This document shows positions 989 through 63,148 of a stretch of 64,000 bases of DNA, in pieces. Origin of the DNA: Neoechinorhynchus agilis. Taxonomy: Eukaryota; Animalia; Acanthocephala. A program made the position numbers and the translations under genes. Within the stretch, counting starts at the first letter, position 1. The number at the start of each line of letters is the position of its first letter. Below the pieces are notes generated by a model. The model did no database searches. It saw only the letters and a list, made by a program, of their open reading frames with translations, and was not told the DNA's origin. The stretch is taken from assembly GCA_051530055.1 (NCBI GenBank), contig CM121342.1, positions 14,399,480 through 14,463,479 on the forward strand, read 5' to 3'.

Positions 989-1090
989 GCAATTTCAAAT
1001 TCACGTACCTTCCTTGCTCATTGTCGCCATAGAAACCATATCCCTGTTTAGAAGGTTTTGCATAGTTTATCAAGAATATCATATTTTCCA

Positions 1091-1889
1091 ATGTCTATTG
1101 GTAGTTCATCATCGACTGAATCGGAAGATGAACTCAGGTGTGTGATCTGTATGGAGAAGTATGCTCCGTCCGCATTCGTCAAATCAAAAAATTGTGGTCA
1201 CGGTGCATGTGGTTTGTGTATGGTGAAATGGATGTGTGCGACGCCAGCCAAAGTTCGATTGTCCACTTGCCCACTTTGCCGGTCGAACCTTTTTGAACGA
1301 GATATCTGTCATCTTGTTTACCTAAATCAAAGACCAATCGATGGAATGTCCATCGAAATACTCGACACCATCAAATTTGCTACAGCGTGCACAGAGCCTA
1401 AATTTAGACTAAGATACGTAAAGCGAATGCTGTATCATCGGGCGATTTTCGTTTCGAAAATAGAGAATCCGGACGATCCATCGGAAGGAACTTCTCGGTG
1501 GGTTCGTCCGACTTCAAAAGATATATTTACTCAAGAAACTCTTTAACGAAGAACCTCCTTCTTAAAGATTCTTGAATAGACGAAGACCAAGTTATTTCAA
1601 TAGAATGTACTCGTTTCTTGTGAACGAGCTTCGAATACTTTACTGCTATCAAAGAAAGGCTCCGAGACGTTTGGCGAAATATGTCCAAAGGTACGGCTTG
1701 GATTCCAGCATTTTCAAAGAAAAAACTGAGAAGTTCGTTCATTCCGCTTTCGTTGATCAATTCATCCATGAACTTATAATGTTCTGCAAGCTTTATCCAG
1801 GCCTTAAATACGCTCACAATTACTCAATTTACAATGGAAAAACGTTGAGAGACCTGTGTAAAGAACCGCAATTACTTGTATTTCTTTGA
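1091..1889 (+). CDS. TOPORS: Topors-like C3HC4 RING E3 ligase (2 exons: 1091-1497, 1568-1889)
   Basis: RING motif CVIC..CGHGACGLC..CPLCR. A 70-nt intron GTGGGT..CTTAAAG (1498-1567) joins the two ORF-track frames. Exon 2 (RMYSFLVNEL..RYGLDSSIF..FIHELIMF) resembles the conserved Topors post-RING region (RLVPWLKREL..RYDLESQAF..FIHEFISF, recalled from memory). Confidence 0.6.
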
Positions 1890-2119: not shown

Positions 2120-3230
2120 TTAACATATAATTGAATTTTGAAGATTGGCCAGCCGGTAACTTATGTCAATGTGTGGCCTTTTTATCACACGGCTATGCCG
2201 CATGTAGATGTCGCCCAAGGTCGGAGCTAATGGCGATCCCATGACTATACCATCTTTTTGATCGTATAAAGCGTTCTCAAATTCAGAGGCAGTCATACTC
2301 GTGCACCATTGAATTAGGGACTGCCACGGTCCAAGGTCCAAACGTGGTTCACTACAATTCTTCGATAGTAAATCAGCCGATAATTCAACCGTTTTGGTCA
2401 AGGGGACATTGGTGAAAAGAGCGTCCACATCACCCGTAAACATTCTATAATGCTTAACGTTAATTTTCCTGATCTCAATCGCAAACTTGGGCCCATCCTT
2501 GATGTGTGAAGAAGATGTGCTTAAAATCACTCGTAATAAAGAATTGATCCTTTTGGATAGGCGAAGTAGATCGAATCTAATGCTTCATAATATAGTTCGG
2601 TCCCTTGTTCAGCAAATTCAATTCCCTTGAGGAAAAGGTTTGTCGGTAAAACTGAGCCGACTCATGGGATATATAGAATGCACTGTGAGCAGTGAGAGAA
2701 AGTATATATCGGACAAACGATGCAGGGCATTAAGAAGAGAGTCGCCCGGCATATGCAAGCTTGCGATCGATTTGAGCATTCTTCGGCAATCTCTAATCAT
2801 CAAGAGACATGCAAGCATCGAGCGGGTTTTGGTGGCACCAACTTTATAGACATAGAACAAAACTTAAAAAGACCTCTTGTTTTGGAGGCCTTACACATCG
2901 CTGTGTCCAACGCAATGGAAGGAAATAAAGCTAATTTTAGCGGGGTTCGAGCGGATAATTGGTCCCCGAACTTCGGGTTTGGCGATCCCGCGCACTCGAG
3001 CTCAAAACCTTAATGTGTAAAACTCATTTTTTAGATGACTGATGAGGCGAGCTTACCCCGCGAAATATTTTCAATAAATCAAATATGTTATGACCAGGAT
3101 TATTTTCATCAAAAGTATACTTTGATTAGCCCAAAGGAGTTTCTATCGATGAAGGTAATTGAATATTACACCAAATTCTGTTTGAATGCCAATTGGAATC
3201 TAGGATGGGAAAAAGCAACTCGATAACCGT
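2120..3230. mobile_element. Penelope-like element remnant: RT fragment (- strand) inverted relative to GIY-YIG endonuclease and pseudo-LTR (+ strand)
   Basis: The - strand ORF has DALFTNVP and QKDGIVMGSPLAP (PLE RT motifs). The + strand from ~2665 reads HGIYRMHCEQ*EKVYIGQT..KRVARH..VLEALHI (GIY-YIG with an in-frame stop). 2940-3160 is near-identical to the reverse complement of 51977-52195. Confidence 0.9.
3036..3072 (+). ncRNA. Minimal type I hammerhead-like motif in PLE pseudo-LTR
   Basis: TGA-CTGATGA-G-GCG(N9)CGC-GAAA-TA-T-T-TTCA; stem I is imperfect. An identical core occurs on the - strand at 52062-52099. Confidence 0.65.
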
Positions 3231-3396: not shown

Positions 3397-3915
3397 CGAA
3401 AAACTTGCGAAACAGAGGCAAAGCTTAGAGAAATGTCGGAACTTTCCGAGAGGTGAAATATTGGGGAGATAAATTAGTAAAAATTTAAATCCGGGGTATA
3501 ACTAAGAAAAAGAAAGTATCTTTTGCCGCGAAGTTATTAATTGGAGATATAATTTATTCGTGGAACTTTAACAGTGTTTTTAAGAGAGACCCGAAAAATT
3601 TCCGAAACAAATGCAAACCTAGAAAAAACGCCGGAACTATCCAAGAGGTGAAATGTCGGTAATAAATTAGTAAAAATTCAAATCCGATTGCAAGATAACT
3701 AAGAAAAAGAAAGTACCTTTTCCCGCGAAGATAATAATCGAAGATATAATTTATTCGTTAAACCTAACGGTGTTTTTCGAGAGAGACCCGAAAAACTTGC
3801 GAGATCAATGCAAACCTTTAGGAAATGTCGGAACTATCCGATAGGTGAAATTTCGGGGAAATAAATTAGTAAAAATTGAAATTCGTGTTCAAGATAATTA
3901 AGAAAAAGAAAATAT
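3397..3915 (+). repeat. Tandem repeat, ~195-197 bp unit x ~2.6, each unit with a decayed hammerhead-like motif
   Basis: Units start at ~3397, 3592 and 3789. Each has a TCGGA-ACTA-TCCGA-type hairpin followed by GAAA-NN-T-Y-GG. Dispersed copies occur at 20915-21058 and 29425-29700. Confidence 0.85.
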
Positions 3916-5763: not shown

Positions 5764-6006
5764 GTAGAAATAAATTACCATTGTTAGTTACAAAGTTTGT
5801 CAATAGCATAAAAGCAACCGACCTAATTTGCTAGGTTTTTTACTGAGCAAGAGATTGAATATAAATGCAGTTTCAAAGCTAAGATCATTGAGTTAGAACA
5901 AAAGAAACAAAAACCAAAAATGTCATATATCATTGTTCTCGGGGTGAATTTGATTGTACGTTGGCGAATCATGTCCCCGGTGTTATCGATACTCATTTAT
6001 TTATTT

Positions 6007-6046
6007 GAGAAATATTTCCCAAGGTTTTCCTTGCCTCTTCAGTCTC
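6007..6046 (-). ncRNA. Inverted partner hammerhead with C11.1>G mismatch
   Basis: Reverse complement reads GAGA-CTGAAGA-G-GCAAGG-AAAA-CCTTGG-GAAATATT-TCTC. Confidence 0.65.
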
Positions 6047-6396
6047 TATCTAAAACGGACATGATATAAACAGCATGCACAGCCGGTCATTTCTGGATGT
6101 AGCTCAGATCCGCGGGTTTGCTAATACCCGAAGTGTGGGGGGTTTCGATCCGCACACACCTAATTCTTGGGGCCATTCACATCCGCGGAAATCCAACGAT
6201 GGAAGGCAACAAATCAAACTTCACTCTGGTGCTACCAAAGTTGCGTAGCACGACGAACAAATTAGTCGGCAACAAACCGCAAGAAATGTGTGCGGATCGA
6301 ACCCCCACACTTCGGGTATTAGCAAACCCGCGGATCTGAGCTACATCCAGAAATGACCAGCTGTGCATGCTGTTTATATCATGTCCGTTTTAGATA

Positions 6397-6436
6397 GAGA
6401 CTGAAGAGGCAAGGAAAACCTTGCGAAATATTTCTC
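6397..6436 (+). ncRNA. Minimal type I hammerhead ribozyme (structurally intact candidate)
   Basis: Stem I GAGA/TCTC; core CTGAAGA plus extra G; stem II GCAAGG-AAAA-CCTTGC; GAAA; palindromic stem III (GAAATATTTC); predicted cleavage after AUU at 6432. Confidence 0.8.
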
Positions 6437-6501
6437 ACATAAATAAATGAGTAACGACAACACCGGGGACAGGATTCGCAAACATACAAACAAAAACTAA
6501 A

Positions 6502-12460: not shown

Positions 12461-15436
12461 GGGGAAAACAAATTTATCTAAAGCGTCTATTACTAACAAA
12501 CAATCAATCAAATCTTCTAAACTGAAGAGTTCATAATAACACAACTTTTGCTATTCATAATGAGGCAGATCTCTTCCCTCCGCCCACTTCGCCCTCGATT
12601 TCGGCTCGCTGTACTGTATGCGATCGCGTCATAGGCGTGACGATAAGTGGGCTCATTCGAAAACATCGCCCGGTACGATCTCGACGCCCTGGATCTTCCC
12701 TTCCACCAGTGTTGGACAAACCTTTTATCATCGACGGTCACGAAACTCAAAATGTGATGAAGCGCCTCTTACAATATCTTCCAAACACGCTCTGGAAGAG
12801 GATTCCAAAAGGAGCCAGGAACAGCTGCTGTGAAATGTTCTCGAAGCTGCTGGCAAACTGCCTATCTGAACCGACGAATACAAACTATTCACGTTTATTC
12901 GCCTTTCCAAAATTGGTTCTGAGTACTAGCCGTGACCCCGAGTCCAGCCTCACGACCACCATCAAGCAGCGGATAACCAATTTTGATCGACTTTTTGAGG
13001 AGGCTGTGACGAAAAGTTACAATAATCAAACTTTACCAAGAAACGTCCAGAAGGACCCTTCGGCCGCCGTTATAATTTGAGTAATAGGATTTCTGCCAAA
13101 TTGGCAGACGCAGATGTCCGTGGAGCGGTCAGGTTACTCAGTTCCACGGCTACGTTTGCGGACAACGACCGCTCGACACTGGAGGCGTTGAGAAGTAAGC
13201 ATCCTTCAGCTTTGCCACCGATTTTGCCCCCGATACCGGAAAAGTCGCGTCAATCGACGAGGTGCACGCGGGAGGAACTTAGATGTGCTGTATCCTCGTT
13301 CCCCAATGGGTCGGGACATGGACCCGACGGACTTCGACCCCAACACATCAAGGATATGTTGGGATTTGGAACGGGAGTGATGGGAATGAAGCTCGAAACC
13401 AAACTCGTTAATGTGGTCGATGAAATCATAAATGGACCTCTCCCACTTGAAGCAACGAATTTTCTATTCTCGGCATCTCTTTGCGCCCTTTCCAAATCAA
13501 ACGGAGATATTCGTCCGATAGCTGTGGGCTGCACTCTAAGACGTTTGGCAGGGAAGATTTTGTGTAGGCGACTGAGCGAAAGGGTAGGTGAGCAACTCAG
13601 ACCTTTTCAGTTGGGCTGCTGTACTCCATGTGGAGCAGAAGCGATAGTGCACTCCACACGTACCTATATCGACGCCTCTGCCACCCCAACGGTTGTCCTA
13701 AAAGTCGATTTTTCGAACGCCTTTAATACAGTCGATCGAACAGCCTTGCTAATTACCATTGCTCGAGAATTACCTGAAGCCTATGAATACTTTGTGAAGG
13801 CGTATGGTTCTAAGACACCTCTACATTTCAACGAGCACACCATTTGGTCCGAAACAGGCCTGCAACAAGGCGATCCTCTCGGCCCCATAGGATTTTCCTT
13901 AACAACCAATGGAATATCTCGTGAGCTCAAGGCAAGTTTGAACGTCTGGTACTTGGATGACGCGACATTGGGCGGTGACCCAAAGACAGTTCTAGAAGAC
14001 CTGCAATCCCTGCTTGTTTCTGCTGCGGAATTGGGCTTACGTGTCAACCCCGCGAAGTGTGAACTATTGCCACTAAATATTTCACATTCTCGCATGACGG
14101 ATATAATGCAGTCCTTCGAATCCGTTGCCCCAGGAATCCGATTAATCAACCGGCAAAGCTTCACTCTTCTCGGCAGTTGCGTCCTGGATGCGAACATAAA
14201 TCGCGAGATAGAAGAAGAGCTTCCTAAACTGGATCTTTTGTGCTCCCGCGTTCAAGAATTGAATGCACACGAAGCTCTCTTCTTGGTGAGAAACTGCCTA
14301 TACATACCGAGGCTTATGTTCAAGATGAGAGCAGCCCCGTACTTCCGACACACCAAACGTCTCCTTGACTTAGATGGTTTGATGAAAAAGCATCTTGAGA
14401 AGGTAACAAACTGCGCCATCACTGATGAAGCTTGGCAACAAGCTGCCCTTCCGATCAAATACGGAGGTTTAGGCTTACGAAGTGTGGCTGGTTTGGCCCT
14501 TCCGGCATTCGTATCCTCGATGCACAAGACGGAGGAATTACAGGGGGAAATTCTTTTAAACAGAATGCCGAAGCCATGCAAACTATTGAAACAGGGAGTC
14601 ACATCATGGCTCTCGCAGGCCGGTCTGCAACAAGCTCCAACCAACGCGCACGAACAATCTGCTTGGGATAAACCCTTAATCCTGACGGCTCACAACAAAC
14701 TAAAAGGCCAGATGGACGAGATGTCTCAAGCTAGACTTGTGGCCAGTTCCTCGAAGGAGTCAGGCGCATGGTTGAACGTTTTGCCAATTGGTACTTTGGG
14801 AACTTTGCTGGACGACGAGACAGTTCGAATAGCCGTCGCTCTACGTTTGGGACTTCCAACCTGTGCCCCACACCAGTGCCGATGTGGAATAAAAGTTGAC
14901 GTGCTCGGGAGACATGGACTCTAGTGCAACAGATCGAGCGGTCGTTTCCCAAGGCACGCAGAGCTCAACGCGATCATTAGCAGAGCTCTGAACTCGATGC
15001 ACGTTCCAACCATCCTGGAGCCCAGTCCCGACGGTATGACCGTTTTCCCTTGGAAAGAAGGGAAGAGTCTAATTTGGGACGCAACATGCGTGGACTCACT
15101 CGCCATGTCCAACCGGCAAGATGCTTTAGCGGAGACGGGAGGAACAGCGAGTGCCGCCGAAAGGAGGAAAGCGGAGAAATACAGTGAGCTCAAACAAAAT
15201 TACATTTTCCTTCCTTTAGGCGTGGAAACACAAGGGGCGCTGGGATCTTCGACACGAAGCTTTTGTGCCGAACTCGGACGACGACTTGCAGCACAAACAG
15301 GGGAGCGACGCGAGAGGATTTTCCTGATCCAAAGAATAAGCCTCGCAATCCAACGAGGAAATGCGGTCAGCGTCCGGGGGACGATTTAAATCTAAAATTG
15401 TCCTTTAAAAAAAAGAAACAATAAAAAGATTATTAG
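12461..15436 (+). mobile_element. CRE-clade non-LTR retrotransposon (zinc finger, RT, CCHC knuckle, REL endonuclease), near-complete, 10-bp TSD
   Basis: CTVCDRVIGVTISGLIRKH zinc finger; RT motifs GPDGLRP, RPIAVG, DFSNAFN, QQGDPLGP and YLDD; C.CG..H..C..RH knuckle; REL motifs PDG..PW..GK..WD and E.RK..KY. Flanked by CAAAAAAAAT at 12451-12460 and 15437-15446. Lesions: frameshift at ~13078, TAG at 14922, and a short linker before PDG. Confidence 0.93.
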
Positions 15437-15923: not shown

Positions 15924-17936
15924 TTAAGCAGACAGTTCAGTATTCCGCTCAACAGACGTGGGCCGCGGTATAGAGTTCGATATTGTTGGAATAGAATGCG
16001 AGCTAGTCCTTTTCACGCTGCCTTGCAAGTAATCACTTTCTGCTAATTGTTTGATATCGGGTCGCTGTCGTACTTCGTATGTGAGGCAATATGAAATAAA
16101 CGCTCGGCCTTCATTTGAAGTGGTAGGTTTCACTGGAAATTGAACATGTTTAGCTTTCAAAATAGTTTCACATTCTAGAAGTGCCGATTGCGACAGATTG
16201 TGCCCAAATGGTTTGCGGCCAAACAAACACTGAAAATAGAGGCATCCGACAGACCATACATCCACCTTCGAGGAAATCTTCGGAGGCTTCAAAGATTGAA
16301 CAAACACTTCTGGCGGTAGATACCAGTAAGTTCCCGCACCTTGAGATGTCAGATCCATTCCACGTTCAGGGTCGTATACGTCGTCGTGCATTTGCTTACT
16401 GAGACCAAAATCGGTCAGTTTTACTTTTCCGTAGTCGTTTCCAGTACCGACAAGAACATTAGCTGGTTTCAGATCGTAGTGTATAACGGGAGGTTTAACG
16501 CAAGTGTTTAAATAAAGAAGCGCACTAACAATTTGATTCAGGATGCTACGAGCTTCTTTTTCGGCCAATTGCTTTTGCTCTTTTAGTACGAGGTCCAAAT
16601 CTTTTCCATCGAAAAATTCAAGAACCGTACAAAACCAATCTTGGTCCATGTCAAATGCATCAATGAATTGAACAATGCGGGGGTGATTGACCGTTCGAAG
16701 TATATCGTTCTCACGAATACCATGACGTATGTAGTTCATTTTCTTCTCACGACTCCATTCTTTATTGAGCATGTGAATCTTACAAGCAACGTATCGAAAC
16801 TCTTTTAAGTCGTAGGCTTTATGAACTTCACTGAATCCACCTTTTCCAAGCAATTTGACCATCAAAAATCTGTCACGAATCAATGTAAATCCATTGGATG
16901 TATAAATTGCACACTTGACCAGCGCACAGCAGAAAAAAATTGGAATTCAATCTCCAAACAAAAACAACCACCTTTTCCCATTGCTGGTGCTGGTCAAGTA
17001 AGTGCAAAACGTAATGGTACAATTAATCTTAAGCTCAGGCGGATTTTGATAGAACGTACTATTATCCTCTTGAAGAAGTCTTTTCATTTCTCTAATATGC
17101 AAACTCTTTTCCTTGTCCAGTTTTTCATACTCAGCCATAAGTTCAGTTTCTTCTTTCTTAAGAGCAGCCGTCCTAATTCGAACAAGATCGTCATGTTCAC
17201 AAAACTCTCGAAGGAGAAGTTGAGGATTGTCGCAATATTCGTTAGACCATGATTCGGCGCTATCATTGTTCCTACCAAGACCAGCAGCCAAAGACTGTTG
17301 AAGTCGATTCATATCGGTTCTACGTTTGGACAGCGCTTTCTTTTCTTTTTCCAGTATCTCCCTTCTTTTATGTAGAACTTTTTGTATACGATCGAGCTTT
17401 TCGTACTCGAGACCATTCCGCCATACTTCACAGTAAGTAATCGCATGTTTCTGCGGAATGTACTGACCGAGTCGTGTACAATTCATCGATGATACATCAC
17501 GAGCTCGTTGACGATCAATCACGGCTTCCTCTTCAATCATCCGTTGAACTGCACTAGTGGCTGACGAGAGCGAAGCTTTTAAAACATCAACTTCTGACCG
17601 ACACTCTTGAAGACGACCGATGACGTCATCGCGTTCATTGAGAGCAGACGCCAATTCCATCCGTAAATCTTCTCCCTCTTCCTGACTTTGTGAAGAGCGG
17701 TCGAAATACGAAGACGGGTTAATTTGTTCTATAAGACTCAGATCTTCGACTTTTCGGCAAACGTCGCCTTGTATTGGCCGTAAATGAGAAAGAGACGACC
17801 GAGGCAAGTTTTGAGGTGAAGGTGTTTTTGCGGACGTCGATGGAGAGGTCGTCAGTCTACGCTTCTTCCGTTTGGGTTTTTCTACACTTACCAGTTGGTT
17901 ACTGGTGTGAGTTGGCACTGACGTTTCAGGTCGCAT
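15924..17936 (-). CDS. TLK: Tousled-like kinase (coiled coils plus Ser/Thr kinase)
   Basis: LLGKGGFSEVHKAYDL..VACKIH..HYDLKPAN..KLTDFGLSK..TSQGAGTYWYLPPE..ISSKVDVWSVG; the upstream ORF is in the same frame with the TLK coiled-coil pattern (EKSLHIREMKRLLQEDNS). The two ORFs are separated by an insert containing TGA. Further 5' exons are possible. Confidence 0.95.
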
Positions 17937-18135: not shown

Positions 18136-18598
18136 GTCTTCACTCGATAAAGAGTTTATCGAAAGCGTTGTGCGAACTTCTCACAAAGAGGTAGAACAAA
18201 CTCCTTTTTTGTGGTTTGAGGAGTGTTTTTAGGAAACTCTTTATCGGGTGAAGACTTCTATACTTCCTCGCATATCGACAAATCAGAACTAGATTTAGGA
18301 CATCGCTTCCTGGGCTTTTAAGTTTTGTGCTTTTTTTGGCATGAAGTCACACCGATCTCTTACATCGATGTAATTTAATCACTTCTTATTTGATTCTTTA
18401 TAGATTGGTTTGGAACTAAAAAGCCCACTAAACAGATTGAATTGAGTTTTGATTTGTCGATATGTGAGGAAGTATAGAAGTCTTCACCGATAAAGAGTTT
18501 CTTAAAAATACTCTGCAAATATAAAAAAAGGAGTTTATTCTTCCTCCTTGTAAGAAGTTTGCATAACGTTTTCGATAAACTCTTTATCGAGTGAAGAC
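18136..18598. repeat. MITE-like inverted repeat, ~155-bp arms, each arm itself internally inverted
   Basis: 18136-18291 is the reverse complement of 18446-18598; the motif TCTTCAC(T/C)CGATAAAGAGTTT occurs four times in alternating orientation. Confidence 0.88.
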
Positions 18599-23533: not shown

Positions 23534-24472
23534 ATTTTGCTATTATGTTTGTGAATAGGGTTGGCACTCTCGTATTGGAATTTGGAAATTCATAACTTCT
23601 CGGTGATTGGCAACGGTCTTTAATGAGTAGTCAGTCCATACCTTACATATAGAAATCAAATAGACCTATTCGGATGACTATTTGGCTTTTACAGCGATAG
23701 TCTATTCGCATTATAATATAAAAAAGTAGGCTGAGAGTGATTTTTATTTATGAACGTTATTTGACTGAAGATTACAAAAAAAAGACAGGTTCCCCAATTC
23801 TTGAATATTCTGAGCGAATCACTAAGAAAATTCGTGAATCAGCATTTCCAATGTAAAATATTGAAGAGCTCACTTTAAAGGTGAGTGGCTCTTAAAACAT
23901 CGTCTACTTAAATAATCTTTATTAATTCCTAAGTATTTTCCCATTGAATCCACTCAATTCGTGACAAATCTGAATCTACTTCTTGAAGCGCTTTAATGTA
24001 GGCAAACATTTAATTTCAATAAAACAAATCATGCTTACATGAATTGAATAGGTACCCTAAGATTTTCGATAAAAACAATGTAAAAAACAGGCTCTCTTCC
24101 AATCGTAATCACTGTACAACTATTATTGGATTCTGAGTGAAGCGTTATTTTAATTAGTTATTCATAAATGGCAAATTGATATACAATATTAACATAAGCA
24201 TACAAAAAACTCAACAAAACAATAAGACCAAATATTTTATACATTTGACGACAATAACGTATTAATCGTCAATGATTTAGAGACCCAAACTTACGTAACT
24301 CGATCGGCTAAAGAAAAACGTGAAAAGAACGTTTAGGCGATGGCCGAATCAACAAAATAGACGAATTCGAAAATGAATTATTGATCAGTTTGAACAGCAT
24401 TTTAGCTCTTTTGTTTTAGTAACATTAAAATTCTATCCAAATGTTCCTTCGAGTAGATGTGGATTCTCACTG

Positions 24473-24656
24473 GCGAATTGTAACACACTCGAGTTTCATT
24501 GAAATCAACCTTGCGAATTTTCACGGCTTCAGCATCCTTCTCAAGCATTGTTTTCGGACTCGAATTTTTCTTCGAAAACAATGCTTGGGAAGCAGGCTGA
24601 GGCCTTGAAAATTCGCAAGGTTGACTTCAATAAAACTCGAGTGTGTTACAATTCGC
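24473..24656. mobile_element. Twin-hammerhead fold-back mini-element (~85-bp arms)
   Basis: 24473-24558 is the reverse complement of 24572-24656. HHR-like motifs at 24512-24547 (-: TGC-TTGAGAA-G..GAAA-AT-T-C-GCA) and 24582-24617 (+). Confidence 0.82.
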
Positions 24657-25499
24657 GAGTGAGAAGAATATTAAAATGCTCAACTTCATATGCCACAATG
24701 TTGTTTCTAAAGACAGAAACTAGTGAAAAAATCAAGAAAAATAAATTGCAATGATGAGCATGATTTGAACTTATTTTAAGATCTTTTGACATATCTTCCA
24801 CAAACGTAACTGCTCCAAGCGCGATGAATTTATAGGAAGTTTTAAAAATAAAAAGAGCCAATCGTAAATTTTCCTCAGGATTGCATTATTGTTACCTTGG
24901 TCGCTTGTCAACTTCCGAAAGAGATCATCAAAGAAAAATATATTTTGATTGCTTGAATCAGTCATTATCAGTTCAATTGCTTATAAATGACCGATTCAAT
25001 AATATATTCTTCTTTAATGATATCTCTCGAGTGTCGACAAGCGACCTAAATAACAACGTAAATTTTCCACCTTGGGAATATATTATAATTTTTGAAATCT
25101 TTCATCTTTTATGAAACAGAATATGAGAACACAAAGTGAGATTAACAATTCGAAAAGTCAAAATGGAACTCCCTTTTCATGGCTCCCACAAAATTTTTTT
25201 ATTTTCCTAGTCAGATCGAAAAATTGACTTTACACGGTGGATACGATTTACCGGTTTAATATTTTAATCAACACAGACAATTAATAATTTTTCGCTAAAA
25301 CTTCGCATCATTTAAAACATTCCTTTATTTACTAGAGAATATTCCGACCCATTGGTAATAATGTAGAATAAAATTCATTGGTGCAAGTATAAAAATCAGT
25401 CTAAAATATAGATTTTGCGCATTGAAGAATCGAAGCTATCAACACCGAATTGCGCGAAATGTAGTGAGTAGAAGAAAAGTAGATTCAAGTGCGTTCAAA

Positions 25500-29424: not shown

Positions 29425-29700
29425 GATATTATCTTTTGGTAATTTTGCTACCTCGGATTTAAATTCACTAATTTATTTCCGATATTTCGTCGGATAAGCT
29501 CGTTAGCGAAATTCTTTATGTGAAAAACAGCTTCTTAACTTTCTCTCTTATACCGAAACAATTTACAACGTCAAACCTTGGGAAAATGTCGGAATTATCC
29601 AATGTGAAATATCGGAAATAAATTAGTGAATTTAAATCCGGAGTGGCAAAACTACCAAAAGAAAGTATCTTCCCCCCGAAGATAATAATCCAAGACATAT
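29425..29700. repeat. Inverted pair of the ~196-bp repeat family
   Basis: 29425-29495 (-) mirrors ~29598-29670 (+). The + copy reads ACC-TTGGGAA-A-ATGTCGGA-ATTA-TCCAATGT-GAAA-TA-T-C-GG. Confidence 0.8.
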
Positions 29701-35536: not shown

Positions 35537-38500
35537 TTACAGGTTATCCCACTGAGTGATTCGTTCTTTAAGCCGGTCGAAAATGTTCCACTTTGGCATT
35601 TGAGATGATATCCATGCGCCGGCTACATGTCCAATTTGTACTGGCATATCTTGTTGGGGAGCAACCTCACGAGAAATATTTGGGAGTGACGACTGCTTTG
35701 TCCCAGTAAGACCTGGTTTATGTTGTTGCTTCGGAGTGATCTCTCGAATTTCCTGGCTGGATACACATCGCTGAACATTTGCTTTTTGTTTAGCAGTTTT
35801 TAAGCCAGTGTCTGATGGCTGTGGCTGGATAGAAGCCTTGCTTAAAGTCGTCGAACTCACAGTGCGACTACGGGAATTGGAGTCATGCCTTTCTTGTCGA
35901 TTAAATTCATTCATCAAATGCATCCAGACATCGGGGTCTGTGATTTTCACCTCTTCAATCATATTACTAGGCACATATCCACGCTGTCCTGTAGTTTCTC
36001 CAACATAAAATCCATCTTGTCCGATTTCTCCGTAAATTTTAATAAGTTGGCCTTCCTTAAAAGTCAATTCCTCGTGGCAAGATTCAAGATTTGGAGACAT
36101 TTCCAGAGGAAGATAATCGTAGAGGGCTACAAACAACCTAGCTCGTGACTGAGTAGTACGACGGGTTGGCTCAGTACGAGACCGAATTTGTCCGCTGCTT
36201 ACTGAGTTGGAACGCTCCAGAACCGTTTCGGATTTCTTCGTTGATACATTATCGGGTGATTGTATTCTTTTTGATGCAGGTAGCAACGATGACTGTGGTA
36301 AATTTAAGCTAGCCAAATCAAACACTACTTCGCCTGATATTCCTTCATCGGTGTCCGGTCTTATTGTCAAATGATATTGCTTTTGCTCACTCAAACCAAT
36401 CAGTTTAATTTTATTAGTTCCAGGCTGAGCTGTACAGACGTGTTTTTCATCCAAGAGAATTATATGGCTCAGTAAATTGGACGGCGGCCTCCAACTAACC
36501 AGAACACTTTGTGAATTGATGTATTTAAGTCCGATTTGGTCCGGTTTTAATTGCGAACCGATTCCGAAGACTTGGGTGCAATCATTTCGCTTAGAAATTC
36601 CATATTTTGATTTTAGCAGGACGCAAATTCGGTGAGGCTAAAATGCAAGTGAAAATTGTTAAATCTTTCATCAGGTAACCTTTTAGAGGATGTGATTCGA
36701 GTAGCTGCCATAAAGCCGATTATGCCAGAATTTATGAGTCAGCGAATGTGAAAATAAAGAAATTTGTGTGTATCATTCCCATAAAATTATGTGAAGCATG
36801 ATTAAAATTAAAGCTGAAAATGAATTTCATTTAAAATTCTGATGACAATCCTCTTCGGCTCATCTCATCGAATAATCATCCCCAAAAAGGATTAAATGTC
36901 GTACAAAACCTTGCTTAAATCTATGTCATCAAATACCGCTGACGTTTGTGTTCGTTCAACGTTTTTGTGCAATCGTTCATCAATAACAATTTCGTATTCA
37001 AAAATCACAGATAGGCTCGGTAACTTTACCGGTGGCTTCCACGTGACTTTTATTTGCCGTGGATTTTCATCCATGACCTGCAAGTCTCCAGGTTTAGGGA
37101 TTGAGCATATTGACTTCGTTATGGCCGGCTTCTTATTTCCATTTGCCCAGAAGCAAAAATCTTTTCGAATATAGGAAAGTAAGCAGGCGTTGAAGTCAAA
37201 AAGAGAAAGGCCAACCTGGATATTTTATTTCATTCACAACTCTGATTATTTTCGATGGTACTATTCCTTTGCTGCCTCGGCGATTAAATGCCATGAAGTG
37301 CCCATCAGCAGTCTCATGACCGACCAGTAAAAGAGTTTCATTTTTTTCAACGGCAAGGTATCTACTATCAAAGCACTTGTTTACTGAGTTTCGAACCACT
37401 GCCATAAAGAAAAGAGGCTCGAAGGTCGGTGTTTGGTTTCCTTCTTCCCTCAGAATAGTACCATGATGCACGCGGAGGGGTTCATCTTTATGGCATCCTC
37501 TGGGATTGTAGTAGCCCCTTTCATTATCCTCCTTATCTACGCTAAAATAAAATTGATTTGTCTTAAACGGAATTGCACTATACCTACCTAATTGTTCTCC
37601 CGAATCGGTATTGGTTGCTTTTGTAGCTTTTTCACCTCCGTGGAACTGACTGTTTTGGGAATAGGATCGATTGCGACGGTTTGTGGCGTATCCGTTGCGC
37701 GAATACCGTTGTGATCGAAGAACAGGAAGTGTTTGACTTGATCGGCGCTTTTCAGACTTTCTAAGACTTTCCATCTCCGTCATCATCTCATTTCTACTCA
37801 GCATAAGCATTTCAGCTTTTCGTTCCAATCGATTAACTTTTGCCTATAAGTGGGGAGATTTATTAGATGCATATTAAAATCGCGATATCGTAAACTTAAA
37901 TTTAAGGACAGGGTGCCATACAGATAAATATGTTCTTTGGCGATTTTAAAAAAGAGACTGTTTTATTGATTTCAAATATTTCGTCCGTCTCGTCGGACTT
38001 CTTCAGGTTGTAAATTAATCAGTCTCGATTTTTATAATCGCCAAAGAGCACATATATAAATGAACAACTTCTTTACAACAGATAAATGTTGAGATAGCAT
38101 AAGGGCCAAAAGTTCTAAAGAAATTTAGCCTGAAGCAGGTCGATTCTAAGCATACTACCTGATAAGTAGATCAAAACTTGTTTAACGAGTATCATTCTTC
38201 ATCAAAGATGTTTAAACGAAAGGAACTAAATCGGTACCGACTAAAATGGCACCGATTAAAAGTCCATAACAATGTAAGGAATCAAGAATTATTACTAAAA
38301 TTTTATTATAAAACGTTCAGTAAACGCCTTGGAATAAAATGACGCGAAACCGTAAGTTACATACCTTCAGATTGTCCACTTCGCTCTCACCGCCGATATC
38401 TATAGTCTAAAATAATGGTAGAAGCTTAGTGTAATGAGCATGAAGATTTAGAAGCAATTTGTAAGCTAGTCAAATTGCAATCTTAATGAGCCTCACGAGA

Positions 38501-46389: not shown

Positions 46390-46606
46390 AATTATGCCTT
46401 AATGTTTATGGTCAAAAATCGAAATTATCTGTTGAATTATCCGCAATCTGACAAAATATTTACGACAATTAAAACGTGCTTGTCCCTTTTGCTTTTATTC
46501 TTTAAATCCCGGTGTAACTAATTTTGTGGCTCATTACAGAACCTAGAAATGCTCGATATAGTTCTTAAAATCATATCGAGAAAATCCATCGGGATGGCAA
46601 ATTTTG

Positions 46607-46804
46607 ACTTGTGGTGAAGATAATCCCGATTAAAAATCATTTTATTGTTCTGAAATATTTCGCGAGGAGACCTCGCCTTATCAATCATTGTTTTCGGAGG
46701 AAAATTCGAGTCTCCGAAAACAATGATTGATAAGGCGAGGTTTCCGCGCGAAATATTTCAGAACAATAAAATGATTTTTAATCGGGATTATCTTTACCAC
46801 AAGT
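46607..46804. mobile_element. Twin-hammerhead fold-back mini-element (~93-bp arms, 12-bp spacer), U3-A8 cores
   Basis: 46607-46699 is the reverse complement of 46712-46804. HHRs at 46651-46687 (-: TGA-TTGATAA-G-GCGAGG-TCT-CCTCGC-GAAA-TA-T-T-TCA) and 46724-46760 (+). Confidence 0.87.
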
Positions 46805-47239
46805 TAAAAGTTCTTAAAATATTACGGGATCAGATCCTATTTTTAATTGGGATATAAACACCTTAAACCGAGTTTAAAACTCGCAAGGTGGTGCGAAAGG
46901 AATATTAAAATACTTAGGCATGGCAGTGCGAATTCACACTTAGGAGAATCTGCTCGAGCGCTTACAAATAAAATGGTCGTCGAAACATAGATGACTAATG
47001 CGGAAAATATTCTATGATCAAATTTGAAGTCATAGGACATTCATTGACCATAATAGAAGGTATTCTTTGTTGGTACACTTGAAAAAGTTCATTGCCATCG
47101 ACCATTTAGACCCACAATATTTGTACTCATGTGAGACTAGCAGTTATCTTCAAGACGATCCAGTTGTCACCATCTACGTGATTATTTTATTGTATGACAA
47201 CGATTATCTTCTTGGGAGCGCATTACTCCATATCATAAG

Positions 47240-48045
47240 TTGTTCGGTGGCGCTGTATAGAATTTATATTTCTCCACAACCATGGACGAGCTCAACCATC
47301 TCATTTCCTCGCTCTCCACCCTAAACCTCTCCCTAAATTTATCTAAATCTTTTGAACTTGTCCTCCGCATTTCCAAACGCAACTTTATCCCCGTACCTCT
47401 CCCTCTCCCCATCCAACGCTCCTCTTCTCTCCGAATACTGGGCCTGATTTTACACGAAAACCTTAAATGGGATGCCCACATTTCATTTACCCTCTCAAAA
47501 GCAATCCCTCGTCTGTACCTTATAAAACTCCTCCGGCGTCTGGCGTATCCATTAAACACCTTGCCCACTTTTATCTTTCTGCCTTTTTTCCTATCCTTAC
47601 ATACGCCTACCCCACTTTCCTCGCCCTCTCCGCCAATGCTCTCCATTCCCTTGAAACCTTCCACAAGAGGGCAGCGAGAATATGCGGGACTTCACTCCCT
47701 CCCTCGACGCCCACCTCCACTCCATTTTCTCCAAAAACGCTCTCCGTCTTCTTCAACCCCCTCCACAATTTTCTTCTTTCATCTCTAAATACTCTTCCTT
47801 CGTAAACACCCGTAACCCCAACCTTTTTTATCTCCCCTCGGTCGTACCACCCTCTACCAAAAATCCTTCTTCCCCCAAGCTTAATCTTTCCTTAATAACC
47901 GGAGAACAAGGAAAGACTCCTAATCTGTCATTCTCCTAGACAAATCCCACCTCCCTGCCTCAACATCCGACATACAGACAACTTCAGCAAAGATAGATGC
48001 TGGCAAGTGTATGGATCGTTTTTCTAAATCAATAAAACGTGTTTT
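47240..48045 (+). mobile_element. 3' part of CR1/L2-type LINE (same family as 10605-11335)
   Basis: LRILGLILHENLKWDAHISFTLSKAIPRLYLIKLLRRL; long near-identity to the reverse complement of 10605-11335. Confidence 0.9.
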
Positions 48046-49040
48046 TATATGACCGCGACCCTCCATGAATAACCTCCATTATGAAACTTCTACAAAGGCA
48101 AGCTTCTAAGGCCCATCGCAATAACTCCGCAGACTCTCCCCGTTTACAAAAGGCAGTTACTAACAATATACTTATCGCCCGCAAAAATTTTCTTTCCTTT
48201 AAAATTCGATCATGTGACAACTCAACATGGTGGCGGGCCGTCAAGGACTCGCTTGGTCTACGCCACCCGGATCCCTTCCCTAATTAGTCCTCTACTGAAT
48301 TAAAACGGGTTCTAGATTCCATTAATCAGAACCTCTGCCCTGACTAAACTTACAATCGCTGCTCAACATCAGTCTCCACACAATCTTTCACGCCCGCACC
48401 TGAAACGTTTGTCAACTCGCCATACTCCCCTTAGTTTCATCCTATGAATTACTAAAGTATCTCATGAAATTACCAAAAAATTCGTCCCGAAATGATCCCA
48501 TCTCCCGCAACCCCCACATCATCACCTGAGCGTCTAAATAACATCCCACGAGTAACCTCCCTAAAAATTCGGGGTAGTCAATTTCAATCAAATTTGAAAT
48601 TTGACTCGCACATCACTCTCTCCCTCAAGCACAACACTTTTAAAATTTATCTCCTCAAATGCCTCCGACATTTAGAAATCCCTTCACCCGAACTCAACAA
48701 ATTTTACTTCTGCTATATCTTACCATCCCTCACCTACGGTTACCCCGTATTTTGCCCTTTCCAAATCGCTAATCCGCCGTCTTGAAATTCTTCGCAAAAT
48801 CTAAAATTTGTACAACTGATTTTCCCCCCGCACTGAATGTCTCGATGCTATTTTCATTAAATAATCAAAACGCCTTTCAACCCTACCACCACAATTTCTT
48901 CCACATATCGCTCCTTTTTCACACGAGCACAACACTCGTAATCCTAATTCGTTTAACCATCCTATACCTCGCACCTCCCTGTATCTGCGCTCCTTTTTCC
49001 ATGTTTCCCAATCTTCTCGAATATCATAACCCGAAATGAT
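48046..49040 (+). mobile_element. Decayed fragments of an older CR1/L2-type LINE
   Basis: STWWRAVK (resembles RLWWKNTK at ~10090); NLKFDSHI..IYLLKCLRHL..FYFCYILPSLTYG. Confidence 0.75.
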
Positions 49041-49789: not shown

Positions 49790-50470
49790 CCATCCATGGA
49801 CAAGGATATTGAGCTTGAGGTCAAGACATGTGCCGCGTGGCAAGCATTACGATCGAAGATTCAGTAAGTGCCTTTGATTAATTGGGACGTGCCTTCTAGA
49901 CTCTGGAAACGCATCCATGTCGATTTTGCTGGTCCAGTCGAGAACAAGATGTATCTGGTGGCCGTGGATGCCTATTCGAAGTATCCAGAAGTTTGGTCGT
50001 CTAATTCAGGATTCACTGCGACCACAACGATCACATGCCCACGAGAAGCTTTTGCGAGATGGGGTGTTCCCGAGAAGATTGTTTCTGACAATGAACCCCA
50101 ATTTGTTGCATCCGATTTCCGAACGTTCTGTCAAAACAACGGAATAGAGCACGTGAAGAGCTCACCATACCACCCAAAGACGAACGAGTCCGCGGAACGA
50201 TTTATCGGAACGTTGAACAGGGGATCTCTATTGATTCCGAGCAAAGACCGCCCTTTTGAGTTATCGCAATACTCCACAGATGACTACAAACCGCTGTCCG
50301 TCCGAACTTATTATGGGGAGACGCATTGCGACGAAGTTGGGTAACTTCAAGCCGTCTTTGGAGAAAACAATTAAATCCAGCCTGCGTAAACAGAAGGCAT
50401 ATCACGATACAAAATCAGAAGTTCGGTTCGTTCCCCACGAGACGAGAAGTGGAAGGAGAGAACGATAATA
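49790..50470 (+). mobile_element. Ty3/gypsy integrase fragment
   Basis: WKRIHVDFAGP..LVAVDAYSKYPEV..GVPEKIVSDN.PQF..GIEHVKSSPYHPKTN..AERF. Confidence 0.92.
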
Positions 50471-51530
50471 GCAACACCAGGTCCGGCATCGTACAGGGTA
50501 GATGGAACGGATAGGGAAAGGTGCATGCATGGAGATGCGATACGAAGGAGGCTGGAAAATGTAAGTGAGAGGCAGAAAGGAGAAAGCAAGGTCATTATTT
50601 GCGGCCGCACTGGCGTGTGATGATTCCCTTCAGCAGGTGAGATTCGAAGATGATGACGTGCCATACATAATAATTAATCGATGGCACGTGAGTGGGTGTG
50701 CTTGAGGCATTGCGTTTAGCGGACGGTTGTTCATTCAGTATAAACTGATCTAAGCATGATACTTGGATCTTCTGTTCGACCGTAGCTTTAGTAATTACTT
50801 CAGCTGTATCGCTTTCTTTTTTCTATCGTTACCTTTTATCCCAGTCACAATATCATACTCCCCAACAGCAAGATTAGAATCATAAGGTACCGCAGGCTGA
50901 ATATTTTCGTTCGAGTTTGGCAATTAATGGTATCTACCCTGAAACAGGGTTTCGGGGCTTAAGTCCATTGGGCCATCTCGGCTCAACTACGGAATGTACA
51001 AACTCTTCTATTCTTTAACTTTTTATCTTTAAGTCTTGCTAGCTCCGATTTTCTACATTTTGGTTCTGAGACCGTATTTCGTCAGCTTTGTCATGCTACG
51101 CACGTGATTATCCTGCAATCGTTTCCTTTTGATCAATGACAATATCATGCCGTCTGAACTGGTTCGAATTTAAGAATGTAAAGATGAAGAAGAGGAACGA
51201 TATTTCAAGTGAAATGCATAACGGTGCAGTTTAAGTGTTTAAAAAAATCTAAAAATTTGATTTTAACATCGTTATGTGCGGCTGAGCCGATTGCCTTTTT
51301 ATCGATAAGTCTAAGATGAGGATTTTCAAAAGCATGCGACTTGAAACGTTTTTCTCGAGTTCCAATAGGAAGGTCACATAAACATTAAATTCTGAGTGTT
51401 AGATTGATCTCAAATCATATGTGAATGAAGCTAACAATACACGGCTGAATTATGGACACACAACCCACAGATTTTGGTCCGGAAGGTGCTGGTTTACGCT
51501 AAATACCGATCAGCCTACAGTATTGAGTTT

Positions 51531-52490
51531 TCATATCGAGAAAATCCATCGGGATGGCAAATTTTGACTTGTGGTGAAGATAATCCCATTTAAAAATCAT
51601 TAACGATGCAGGACACTCCAAAAAGAGTCACCCAACATAAACAAGCCTGCCGACGTTTCGGTCATTCATCTAAGATTTAAAACCACCAAGAAACTATGCA
51701 ACGTAACATAGATTTTGACGGCACTGAATTTATAGAGAAGGAGCCAAATCTTTGAAGACGCCTTGTTCTTGAGGCCTTGCACATCTCGGCGTCCAATACA
51801 ATGGAAGGCAATAAAGCGAATTTCAGCGTAAAACTACCTGCTAGTTATGAAGTTAAAATCAATAGGACAAACGATACAGTGCAGGGTTTACGAGCTGGCG
51901 CACGGTCCCCGAACCTTGGAAGTAGCGAACCTGTCAACCCGAGCCTATCAGACAAAACATAGAAAAGAACCATAACCACAAACCATCGATAGAAAATCCT
52001 TTGGGCTAATCAAAGTATACTTTTGATGAAAATAATCCCGGTCATCACATATTTGATTTATTGAAAATATTTCGCGGGGTAAGCTCGCCTCATCAGTCAT
52101 CTAAAAAATGAATTTTACACATTAAGGTTTTGAGCTCGAGTGCGGCCAAACCCGAAGTTCGGGGATCAATTATCCGCTCGAACCCCAACGCTATATTACG
52201 TTTTTTCCTTTATTGTTAACTTTTTTAGATGATTGATAAGGTGATGGTTCCTCTTTCGAACTATTTCCTAATAATAAAATGATTTTTAATCGGGATTATC
52301 TTCACCACAAGTCGTAATGAGTTTTGTACTGAACACTCCGGATTCTGTACGTCATCAGCGGTAACGGATCCGAACCCGTTAATTTGAGGAAGAAGGAATA
52401 CAGAATTATGTCAATTACAATACAAAAAACAAAACATTTTTAGATAACTGATGAGATGAGACTTCCTCTTGAAATATCTCTCAATTCAAT
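51531..52490. mobile_element. Composite PLE locus: GIY-YIG C-terminus plus pseudo-LTRs of three subfamilies in mixed orientation
   Basis: 51603-51962 encodes ..LVLEALHISASNTMEGNKANFS. 51977-52195 is an inverted copy of 2940-3160. 51567-51600 and ~52279-52312 are inverted copies shared with the 46607 element. HHR-like motifs at 52062 (-), 52233 (+) and 52448 (+). Confidence 0.85.
52444..52482 (+). ncRNA. Decayed minimal hammerhead-like motif
   Basis: CTGATGA-G-ATGAG-ACTTC-CTCTT-GAAA-TA-T-C-TCTC; stem I poorly paired. Confidence 0.55.
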
Positions 52491-62239: not shown

Positions 62240-62827
62240 AACTTATAACGTGCACTCTGTCGTTAATAAAGAAATTTCCTTTCTAAAATCCAAAACATCA
62301 CAGAAAACGCGAGAGTAAAATATTTGTTGTTCTCTAAAGCGAAAGTTCATAAATATTCATTAGAAATAAATATCTAAGAAATGAATTTCTCAGTTTGGTG
62401 TTTCAAATCCTAAGTTTTAGGCGGTCCTAAGAACCTTTTATCGTTCTAGGCTTCATCATTTTCGCATAAAAAAACATTGGGACTATTTCGTCGATTTTAT
62501 ACACCTCACTCAATCCATAAAACTCTCTCAAAATAGACCATACTTTTTACGTGTTGTATTTTGATTGTTACTACTCTAAATTCAATGCGACATAAATTGT
62601 CGTATTGGGGATTAAATTCGTTTGGTTAGATATGTTATTTCTTATGTCGCTTGTCAATATTATTGATATAACTGATACAATCGAGCATTGGCAAATTAGT
62701 TGGAATAAAAAAATAAAATTGCGTAAAATCGATTTTTTCGCTGAAGCATTAAAGATGCTTAAATGTTCATTTAGACGAGGTCGTTAAAAAAGCATCACAT
62801 TGATTCACACCGAGGTCTTAACAAATG

Positions 62828-63008
62828 TTTCAGTTTCAATTAGCGATGTTTGATTAAGAAAATAGATTTATCTTAAAAAATTTCGACCTTTTCTTTGGTC
62901 TTCTTCAGTCAGTTTTGTAAGCTTTGACTGAAGAAGGTCAACGAAAAGGCCGAAAATGTTCAAGATAAATCTATTTTCTTAATCAAACATCGCTAATTGA
63001 AACTGAAA
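62828..63008. mobile_element. Twin-hammerhead fold-back mini-element (~84-bp arms, 13-bp spacer), C3-G8 cores
   Basis: 62828-62911 is the reverse complement of 62925-63008. The + motif is TGA-CTGAAGA-A-GGTC-N8-GGCC-GAAA-AT-G-T-TCA; the - motif is TGA-CTGAAGA-A-GACC-N8-GGTC-GAAA-TT-T-T-TTA. Confidence 0.86.
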
Positions 63009-63148
63009 CTATAATGAATAATTTCTTTACAAAGTCTTAACAAATGTTGAGTATTTTTATATATATTTAAAAATGCCACCATCGTCACTGAGTAACTGCA
63101 CACTGACCTTTAATCTCCATTCGTCTGTATACAATTAGCTATTTGGTC

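Follow-up and report, generated by a model that had tools for sequence, protein, structure and literature searches.

A ~240-bp palindrome of Neoechinorhynchus agilis as a probable head-to-head pair of Penelope-like element ends that shares its central hairpin with a second subfamily

What is the palindrome at 24.4-24.7 kb of a 64,000-nucleotide (nt) stretch of the acanthocephalan Neoechinorhynchus agilis (assembly GCA_051530055.1, contig CM121342.1, positions 14,399,480 to 14,463,479; hereafter the window), and how did it come to share its centre with a second palindrome in the same window whose arms are otherwise different? We read it (locus 1; 24432-24669, ~240 bp), at a probability of roughly 0.6, as a solo head-to-head pair of 5'-truncated, 3'-terminal insertion units of an endonuclease (EN)-encoding Penelope-like element (PLE), produced by cDNA fold-back or cross-priming at a hairpin in the 5' untranslated region (5'UTR). 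The question bears on PLE transposition, the least understood retrotransposon mechanism: the origin of PLE inverted repeats, of their one-sided tail and of their junction palindromes is debated, and self-priming, two-strand target-primed reverse transcription and EN resolution have been proposed.

An inverted-repeat search delimits two arms of 93 nt each (24464-24556 / 24573-24665) that are 91% complementary, and the span 24473-24656 of a preliminary description, made from the letters of the window alone, falls within them. From left to right the locus is laid out as follows.

24424..24431, no strand: candidate left target-site duplication (TSD) ATTAAAAT, the longest direct repeat between the flanks
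24432..24463, minus strand: one-sided 32-nt extension, the PLE "tail" (sense TCCACATCTACTCGAAGGAACATTTGGATAGA), codons 29-39 (IHIYSKEHLDR), prolonging the open frame of the left arm
24464..24556, minus strand: left arm, with 5'UTR stem, ATG (24548-24546) and codons 1-28 of the PLE open reading frame (ORF); translation MLEKDAEAVKIRKVDFNETRVCYNSPVR
24512..24547, minus strand: minimal hammerhead, left copy (UGC UUGAGAA G GAUGC-UGAA-GCCGU GAAA AU UC/GCA)
24559..24570, no strand: asymmetric 12-nt loop CTCGAATTTTTC between 13-bp stem strands 24546-24558 / 24571-24583 (one G.T)
24573..24665, plus strand: right arm, with 5'UTR stem, ATG (24581-24583) and ORF codons 1-28, no tail; translation MLGKQAEALKIRKVDFNKTRVCYNSRVR
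24582..24617, plus strand: minimal hammerhead, right copy, probably inactivated (UGC UUGGGAA G CAGGC-UGAG-GCCUU GAAA AU UC/GCA)
24666..24669, no strand: four extra nt (GAAT) from the tail-less arm to the TSD; compare TAAA at 46805-46808 and CGTAA at 52314-52318
24670..24677, no strand: candidate right TSD ATTAAAAT

The right arm differs from the left at eight positions, five of them within the hammerhead ribozyme (HHR). The 8-bp TSD is weak when taken alone (150 of 2000 shuffles reach the same length), and its geometry, 32 nt to the left arm and 4 nt to the right arm, is that of the other four PLE structures of the window. The tail side was assigned by this geometry together with the likeness of ..KEHLD.. 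to ..KEFLS.. and ..MDFLD.., the tail of locus 1 ending in ..KEHLDR and those of two relatives introduced below (copy a and locus 2) in ..KEFLSM and ..MDFLDM. Openness of the frame does not place the tail, the right flank of the locus too being open for ~30 codons.

The arms are the beginnings of PLE ORFs. Translated outward from the centre, the sense arms of both palindromes hold an open frame from an ATG at the base of the central stem, the remaining frames being rich in stops: 28 codons at locus 1, or 39 with the one-sided extension (MLEKDAEAVKIRKVDFNETRVCYNSPVR followed by IHIYSKEHLDR), and MIDKARSPREIFQNNKMIFNRDYLHHK followed by SKFAIPMDFLDM at the second palindrome (locus 2). The hammerhead core occupies codons 2-4 of this frame. 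Two further copies in the window, a and b, read MTDEASLPREIFSINQIC.D.DYFHQK followed by YTLISPK.FLSM, and the former belongs to a collinear 3' end that serves as our reference.

2639..3151, plus strand: reference PLE 3' end (copy a), with GIY-YIG domain at 2639-2959, canonical CUGAUGA minimal HHR and ORF start from 3035, and tail to 3151

The GIY-YIG domain at 2639-2959 scores 25.6 bits in Pfam against a cut-off of 22.6, and its remnant, open and reading GIYRMHC...VYIGQT...LEALHIAVSNAMEGNKANF, lies ~75 nt upstream of copy a; EN+ PLEs are characterised by a GIY-YIG endonuclease with a hammerhead-bearing repeat behind it (PMC4209133, PMC8557442). The last 35 nt of copy a (3035-3151) and of copy b align with the tail of locus 2, and the same EN C-terminus recurs at 51602-51828 and in the spacer of another inverted pair, I1 (6145-6231 of the 5949-6494 pair). 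Relatives of the locus 2 arm were found in the window at 51531-51601 (97%), 52229-52313 (88%), and 51991-52100 and 3035-3116 (76%). The 64-kb window contains no PLE reverse transcriptase (RT), the GIY-YIG fragment had no match in a protein search, a look-up of contigs encoding an ORF of the window returned none, and scans of genome contigs and viral contigs with a 25-mer of the locus 2 arm gave zero. A metagenome scan for CGAAAACAATGMTTGANAAGG returned six matches, which were rejected as chance (high-GC or bacterial contigs, with no HHR downstream). The preliminary description had seen an "HHR-plus-tail module" in each arm, which translation replaces with the first 28-39 codons of a PLE ORF; its distal tails, given as unrelated, are indeed unalignable at the DNA level but homologous in role, and they include the one-sided extension of 32-35 nt known as the PLE tail.

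The motifs within these ORF starts are predicted minimal hammerheads of the PLE type, belonging to two subfamilies. Published traits of such ribozymes are a bulged nucleotide after A9, a palindromic 15.2-16.2 and a U3-A8 core, the last documented as a variant in Schistosoma PLEs (Cercyon), with a helix II of 4-8 bp, a helix I of ~4-5 bp (2 bp in Drosophila virilis) and a conserved G10.1-C11.1 as further criteria (PMC4209133). No Rfam hammerhead model (Hammerhead_1, _3, _II, HH9, HH10) reached its gathering threshold anywhere in the window, nor E<=10 around either locus, as is expected for minimal HHRs, which lack the helix III and tertiary loops of these models. A strict descriptor without the bulged nucleotide missed the family in the window, and a relaxed one, built from the published traits including the bulge, gave three hits at two loci, 6401-6436(+) and 46684-46651(-), against 0.04 per shuffled window.

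Pairing was evaluated over 11 window copies as trimmed HHR segments, whole-arm MAFFT alignment having misaligned the cores. In this set 79% of HHR cells are paired against 59% in shuffles (0/500) and 26-49% with slid partners, and the covariation score is 0.523 against 0.208 for the control. Ten of 13 pairs have changed on both sides, where the shuffle mean is 6.8 and 15 of 500 shuffles reach 10. The core pair is C3-G8 in six copies and U3-A8 in five, with no mixed pairs; of the six pairs of helix II, five have changed in both partners, the paired cells amounting to 76.6%, with a perfect 6 bp in the left copy of locus 2 and the right copy of I1. A bulged G or A follows A9 in 11/11 copies, G10.1-C11.1 is present in 7/11 including locus 2, pair 2.1-1.1 covaries (A-U in nine, C-G in two), and pair 34-35 of helix III is UA in seven and AU in three. 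The differences between loci 1 and 2 listed in the preliminary description are all present with pairing kept (UGC/GCA versus UGA/UCA, AAUU versus AUAU, UUC versus AUU, UUGAGAA versus UUGAUAA), and its view of the motifs as PLE ribozymes from different subfamilies is supported, the hammerheads themselves by the covariation across the 11 copies. Both loci have the U3-A8 core and differ there only at the free N7 (G versus U), the catalytic boxes being UUGAGAA...GAAA in the left copy of locus 1 and UUGAUAA...GAAA on both arms of locus 2. Helix III lacks loop 3 (GAAA-AU-UC at locus 1, GAAA-UA-UU at locus 2), and helix I measures 3 bp at both loci and 4 bp in I1. The left HHR of locus 1 retains the U3-A8 core, the bulged G, the palindromic AAUU and the 3-bp helix I, but the right core (UUGGGAA) is broken by an A6->G change, helix II pairs at only 3/5 (left) and 4/5 (right) positions, the G10.1-C11.1 pair is absent from this locus (G.U left, C.U right) and the minimum-free-energy (MFE) fold recovers the HHR for locus 2 and I1, not for locus 1, whose ribozyme by these signs appears degenerate. 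Compared with its flanks, the HHR segment is hypervariable. Another relative of locus 2, copy c, differs from it (52229-52313 versus 46607-46699) at ~10 positions plus indels over the 40-nt HHR. This echoes the "extreme sequence variability" reported, unexplained, for PLE minimal HHRs (PMC4209133).

The partner palindrome has the same plan.

46560..46820, no strand: locus 2, with a 12-bp TSD AGTTCTTAAAAT at 46560-71 and 46809-20 (2/2000 shuffles)
46572-46606, minus strand: tail, 35 nt
46607-46699 (minus strand) and 46712-46804 (plus strand): arms, with the loop 46700-46711 between them
46684-46651, minus strand: intact U3-A8 minimal HHR, helices I and II appearing in the MFE fold

By inverted-repeat search its arms extend over 46599-46699 / 46712-46812 at 95% complementarity. 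The centre of locus 1 reads CATTGTTTTCGGA-CTCGAATTTTTC-TTCGAAAACAATG on the plus strand (24546-24583) and that of locus 2 CATTGTTTTCGGAG-ACTCGAATTTTC-CTCCGAAAACAATG on the minus strand (46725-46686), the latter with a perfect 14-bp stem and a plus-strand loop that is the reverse complement of ACTCGAATTTTC. BLASTN within the window aligns 24536-24587 with 46735-46682, inverted, at 87% over 54 nt (E 1.6e-11), which upholds the near-identity of the inverted centres first noted in the preliminary description. The stem 13-mer CATTGTTTTCGRA has exact matches in the window only in the four stem halves of the two loci. Given that the asymmetric loop sequence is identical at both loci, the centre is homologous, and not a product of chance or of two convergent hairpins. 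Folded as DNA hairpins, the centres reach -13.4 kcal/mol (z -6.5) at locus 2 and -8.8 kcal/mol (z -3.4) at locus 1. Identity between the loci is 31/40 in the centre plus core and 42/85 (gapped) elsewhere, nhmmer with the locus 1 arm finds only itself in the window, and past the HHR core the arms are unalignable at the DNA level.

Since the arms are ORF starts, the shared "module" can be read as 5'UTR lying directly upstream of the ATG. From its position, the centre would be the last ~26 nt of the 5'UTR, a 12-nt loop plus a 14-nt stem strand ending in CAATG, with those 14 nt repeated inverted. The proposal of a turn-around joined to modules thus survives in part: the centre is common to both loci and the pieces flanking it do reassort, but the turn-around itself is probably UTR. 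Reassortment is seen in copy c (52187-52313), which has a locus 2-type ORF start with 37/37 nt of the distal arm identical, joined at a breakpoint at the ATG / helix I to another upstream sequence, of the TTTTTTAGATG type common to copies a, f and I1. Some exchange between UTR types and ORF-start types at this point is real and is consistent with template switching between PLE RNAs. That two subfamilies share a turning point could be due to a hairpin intrinsic to the UTR, to a fixed 5' end of the RNA or to template-switch exchange.

Locus 1 is one of five inverted or composite PLE structures in the window. In each the HHR sense runs outward from the centre, an extension is present on one side only, 0-5 extra nt stand on the other, and a direct repeat flanks the whole.

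Locus 1: extension 32 nt, direct repeat 8 bp (150/2000 shuffles)
Locus 2: extension 35 nt, direct repeat 12 bp (2/2000 shuffles)
62815..63048: locus 3, third ~200-bp PLE palindrome, arms 62827-62911 / 62925-63009, 13-nt loop, extension (tail) 24 nt at right, direct repeat (TSD) 15 bp GTCTTAACAAATGTT (0/2000 shuffles)
5906..6497: I1, fourth head-to-head PLE pair, arms 5949-6158 (minus) and 6288-6494 (plus), extension ~34 nt (tail 5915-5948), direct repeat (TSD) 9 bp AACAAAAAC (65/2000 shuffles), intact minimal HHR 6401-6436 (plus)
51524..52325, no strand: composite insertion, tail-bearing left end 51532-51601 (minus), tail-less right end copy c 52187-52313 (plus), extension ~34 nt, direct repeat 8 bp (86/2000 shuffles)

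The three weaker direct repeats (locus 1, I1 and the composite) have the same geometry as the strong ones of loci 2 and 3. Locus 3 has a different centre, with an unrelated 13-nt loop and a turn only 3 nt upstream of its CUGAAGA core; the seven mismatches between its arms are all within the HHR, where one pair of helix II is A-U on one arm and G-C on the other, a compensated difference. I1 has ~200-nt arms around a ~130-nt unique spacer that encodes the EN C-terminus (+), the natural upstream sequence of its longer copy, and its right-arm minimal HHR is the best formed in the window (agaga CUGAAGA g GCAAGG-aaaa-CCUUGC GAAA ua UU/ucuc). The outer ends of the composite are the same two ends as those of locus 2, and the tail-less ends of locus 2 and copy c stop identically at ...CCACAAGT; its interior holds an EN C-terminal fragment (51602-51828, +) and the inverted copy b (51984-52186, -).

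The region 51524-52560 as a whole contains at least five 5'-truncated PLE ends of three subfamilies in both orientations, including a further degenerate HHR and ORF start at 52437-52500, and resembles the "unrelated sequences captured between solo pLTRs" described previously (PMC3846280), pLTR denoting a pseudo-long terminal repeat (LTR). A palindrome-mediated junction between copies b and c (52143-52186) was considered and rejected, as the nhmmer overlap there stems from an internal CCCGAA.TTCGGG palindrome and the copies plainly abut at 52186/52187. At the inner RT start site of locus 2 (...CACAAGU/CAAA..., 46572-46640, -) a predicted RNA fold has an AC-rich loop on a 7-bp stem, UCGGGAU/AUCCCGA, reminiscent of the AC-rich stem-loop in which the RT of an Anolis PLE initiates (PMC11167929). 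In copies a and b a hairpin also stands at this boundary, a small one of AUCAAAAG-UAUA-CUUUGAU (copy a: 3100-3151).

How could such a pair arise? PLE tails are 30-40 bp long and present at one end only (PMC8557442, PMC11167929), and in vitro the tail has been shown to correspond to the stretch that separates one internal RT start site from the next, both target strands being cleaved and extended (PMC11167929). Each copy at locus 1 would accordingly extend from the last 14 nt of the 5'UTR over the start codon to codon 28, with a minimal U3-A8 hammerhead embedded in these codons, the left copy (-) having started at the outer RT start site, which would leave the 32-nt tail, and the right copy at the inner one. 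The PLE protein would nick and extend both target strands. Once a cDNA had been copied through the self-complementary UTR, its 3' end could fold back on itself, or could anneal to that palindromic segment in the cDNA of the other strand, and extension on cDNA would in either case yield a head-to-head junction centred on the hairpin. Two subfamilies may turn at the same point by way of a common UTR hairpin, kept by constraint or by template-switch exchange. We prefer a version in which two same-sense cDNAs, begun at two different RT start sites, pair through the UTR segment and extend on each other; this version would account for the unequal ends, the TSD, the occurrence of either loop orientation relative to the tail (locus 1 versus locus 2) and arms that are never identical. 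The palindrome is then a tidy but ordinary example of an insertion by-product already described for PLEs, and a dead-end one, with decayed hammerheads and a transcript that would fold into a ~93-bp hairpin.

Several observations weigh against this reading. The window contains no RT or EN of the locus 1 subfamily, so that the PLE identity of locus 1 rests on its architecture, and its TSD, at 8 bp, is short (150/2000 shuffles). No non-palindromic PLE copy with the UTR of the centre exists within the 64 kb, so that for intact elements the hairpin is presumed; by local alignment with both loop orientations the centre is not significantly similar to the regions upstream of copies a, b, f and I1, and for the region upstream of copy c there is a weak hint only (18/300 shuffles). 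With simple fold-back, the outer ends should be equal and the arms identical at first. The mismatches between arms of loci 1-3 cluster in the HHR (14/18; binomial P about 8e-4), and this clustering, the unequal ends with their tail and the compensated difference at locus 3 favour two templates over strict self-priming. Thus, of the fixed fold-back priming site suggested in the preliminary description, a turn-around at a fixed hairpin stands, and corresponds to the existing self-priming idea (PMC3846280), while self-priming in the strict sense is disfavoured by the arm differences. Finally, locus 3 turns at another sequence with a similar 13-nt loop, and this could reflect a rule of enzyme geometry instead of a specific hairpin.

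A rival account dispenses with an intrinsic hairpin. If the RNAs of both subfamilies begin ~26 nt upstream of their ATG, one cDNA would reach this fixed RNA end and the RT would jump to the 3' end of a second cDNA stopped ~12 nt short. The "loop" would then be 5'-terminal UTR that only the longer copy has, and the "stem" would arise only through the joining of two copies. The I1 spacer, demonstrably the natural upstream sequence (EN C-terminus) of a longer copy, speaks for a jump of this kind, as do arms that look copied from two templates, three palindromes whose loops measure 12, 12 and 13 nt and have two unrelated sequences, the extension of both strands by the PLE RT (PMC11167929), and the fact that loci 1 and 2 can both be read collinearly as ACTCGAATTTT(T)C-YTCSGAAAACAATG. 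We nevertheless consider it unlikely, as two subfamilies would have to share both stop points, 12 nt apart, and Adineta vaga pLTRs have 5'-end palindromes even in direct orientation (PMC3846280). The modular non-autonomous element of the preliminary description, in which a portable turn-around of ~40 nt is attached to HHR-plus-tail modules from one or another PLE subfamily and the whole is mobilised in trans, would explain why the same centre stands on unalignable arms and why UTR and ORF-start types are reassorted at the ATG (copy c versus locus 2); in A. vaga, cis-acting sequences of the pLTR are enough for trans-mobilisation (PMC3846280), and non-autonomous PLE derivatives exist as retrozymes (bioRxiv 10.64898/2026.07.22.740005). 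It is quite improbable, however, because nothing shows either palindrome replicating as a unit: the centre has two copies only and neither palindrome is repeated within the window, a transcript would be a 93-100-bp duplex in which the HHR and the entry site of the RT are buried, decay is visible in the ribozymes (A6G, broken helix II), and known PLE behaviour explains each palindrome as a single insertion event.

An origin outside PLEs, be it a foldback or miniature inverted-repeat transposable element (MITE) DNA transposon, a hairpin-RNA or microRNA (miRNA) gene, or descent of both loci from one duplicated palindrome, is very improbable. Other non-PLE inverted repeats do occur in the window (18136-18598, 29425-29669), and the long hairpins match several miRNA covariance models, but all far below gathering and of a generic long-hairpin type (MIR447, for example, 81.8 bits against 200), and none was accepted as an identification. 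The TSD candidates of 8, 8, 9, 12 and 15 bp vary in length, which a transposase would not lead one to expect, the arms begin PLE ORFs and contain covarying hammerheads, and uniform divergence from a duplicated ancestor cannot yield a ~90% identical centre beside unalignable arms.

Returning to a PLE head-to-head pair primed at a UTR hairpin, a bolder extension, which we regard as doubtful, is that the 40-nt centre is a portable PLE cis element: a UTR hairpin that would sequester the start codon, serve as an obligatory cross- or self-priming site and pass between subfamilies by template switching at the ATG / helix I. If this were true, the mini-palindromes would be regular products, possibly hairpin-RNA sources feeding PLE silencing, and not accidents. 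Minimal products of ~200 bp reduce PLE insertion to two RT start sites and one turning point with no ORF body, and a genome-wide census of them would discriminate between insertion models by how the loop is oriented towards the tail, how alike the arms are at birth and whether intact copies have the hairpin. In genome annotation the appropriate label for palindromes of this kind is PLE fragment; they should not be entered as MITEs or miRNA-like hairpins.

The rest of the window is mixed. Three inverted repeats lack hammerhead motifs (18136-18598; 29425-29669; 53722-53835): two are AT-rich and MITE-like (112-nt and 64-nt arms), and the third, which lies ~1.6 kb upstream of an LTR-retrotransposon pol remnant, is GC-rich and has 44-nt arms separated by a spacer of 26 nt. 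The pol remnant (aspartyl protease, RT, integrase core) belongs to mobile-element content at 13077-14924 (+), 55444-58436 (+), 49868-50344 (+) and 47368-48050 versus 11329-10604, along with a 615-amino-acid (aa) non-LTR-type RT ORF (RVT_1, YLDD), a separate integrase-core fragment and a ~700-bp dispersed repeat (83-90%, inverted orientation). Host-gene exons lie at 15924-16883 (-), 35537-36454 and 37196-37828 (-), and 1058-1546 (+); they include the catalytic domain of a tousled-like kinase in one uninterrupted 319-aa frame (best matches in bdelloid rotifers, then annelids and others, 62-65% identity), SH3-domain exons and a RING-finger ORF. Tandem arrays occupy 1-805, at the window start (period 327, 2.4 copies, 94% matches), and 3397-3911, just downstream of the PLE 3' end (period 197, 2.6 copies, 80%).

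Among known systems, locus 1 is most readily compared with the inverted pLTR and tail insertions of EN+ PLEs (A. vaga Pen2/Pen3, Penelope/Poseidon, Naiad; PMC3846280, PMC8557442, PMC11167929), which are likewise head-to-head inverted 5'-truncated copies with a 30-40-bp tail at one end only, short variable TSDs (at locus 1 a candidate) and an HHR in the repeat; inverted pLTRs are a known PLE form (PMC3846280, PMC8557442), and dual minimal HHRs on opposite strands, 100-700 bp apart, occur in PLEs (PMC4209133). The terminal repeat includes the ORF start in both cases: in A. vaga it covers the first 12 aa, or 22 aa with the tail (PMC3846280), and in an Anolis element the HHR overlaps the ORF start and reverse transcription begins inside the ORF, ~110-118 nt from its start (PMC11167929). 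At the 5' ends of pLTRs, Arkhipova et al. described a palindrome of 18 bp and a "nearly-perfect 38-bp" one, and they proposed self-priming for inverted junctions (PMC3846280), and the junction palindrome of ~40 bp here is comparable to the 18-38 bp of A. vaga. In contrast to those insertions, no ORF body or direct pLTR stands between the inverted ends, so that the whole insert is a ~200-bp palindrome, the junction hairpin is common to two subfamilies with otherwise unalignable ORF starts, and the start codon lies within the stem. The ribozymes resemble metazoan PLE minimal HHRs (PMC4209133) in their predicted type I topology, the additional nucleotide that separates A9 from 10.1, a long helix II (of 6 bp at locus 2 and in I1), a short helix I, the lack of loop 3, the palindromic 15.2-16.2 (expected to act as dimers), U3-A8 covariation and high variability; they depart from them in a helix I of 3 bp at loci 1 and 2 and, at locus 1, in copies without G10.1-C11.1, one of them with A6G. 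Animal non-LTR retrozymes (PMC7229834; bioRxiv 10.64898/2026.07.22.740005) are similarly short non-coding PLE pLTR derivatives that have type I hammerheads and depend on PLE machinery, but they consist of direct tandem repeats whose same-strand ribozyme pair gives circular RNAs, whereas here the ribozymes lie on opposite strands of a palindrome. Repeat searches of the window found no tandem copy with a same-strand HHR pair at the palindromes, which sets them apart from retrozymes. In snap-back cDNA priming, or end-to-end template jumping of the R2 type, a self-complementary cDNA 3' end primes the copying of itself and an inverted duplication results at the loop. Locus 1 departs from simple snap-back in its unequal outer ends and in the non-random differences between its arms, and cross-priming between two cDNAs fits it better.

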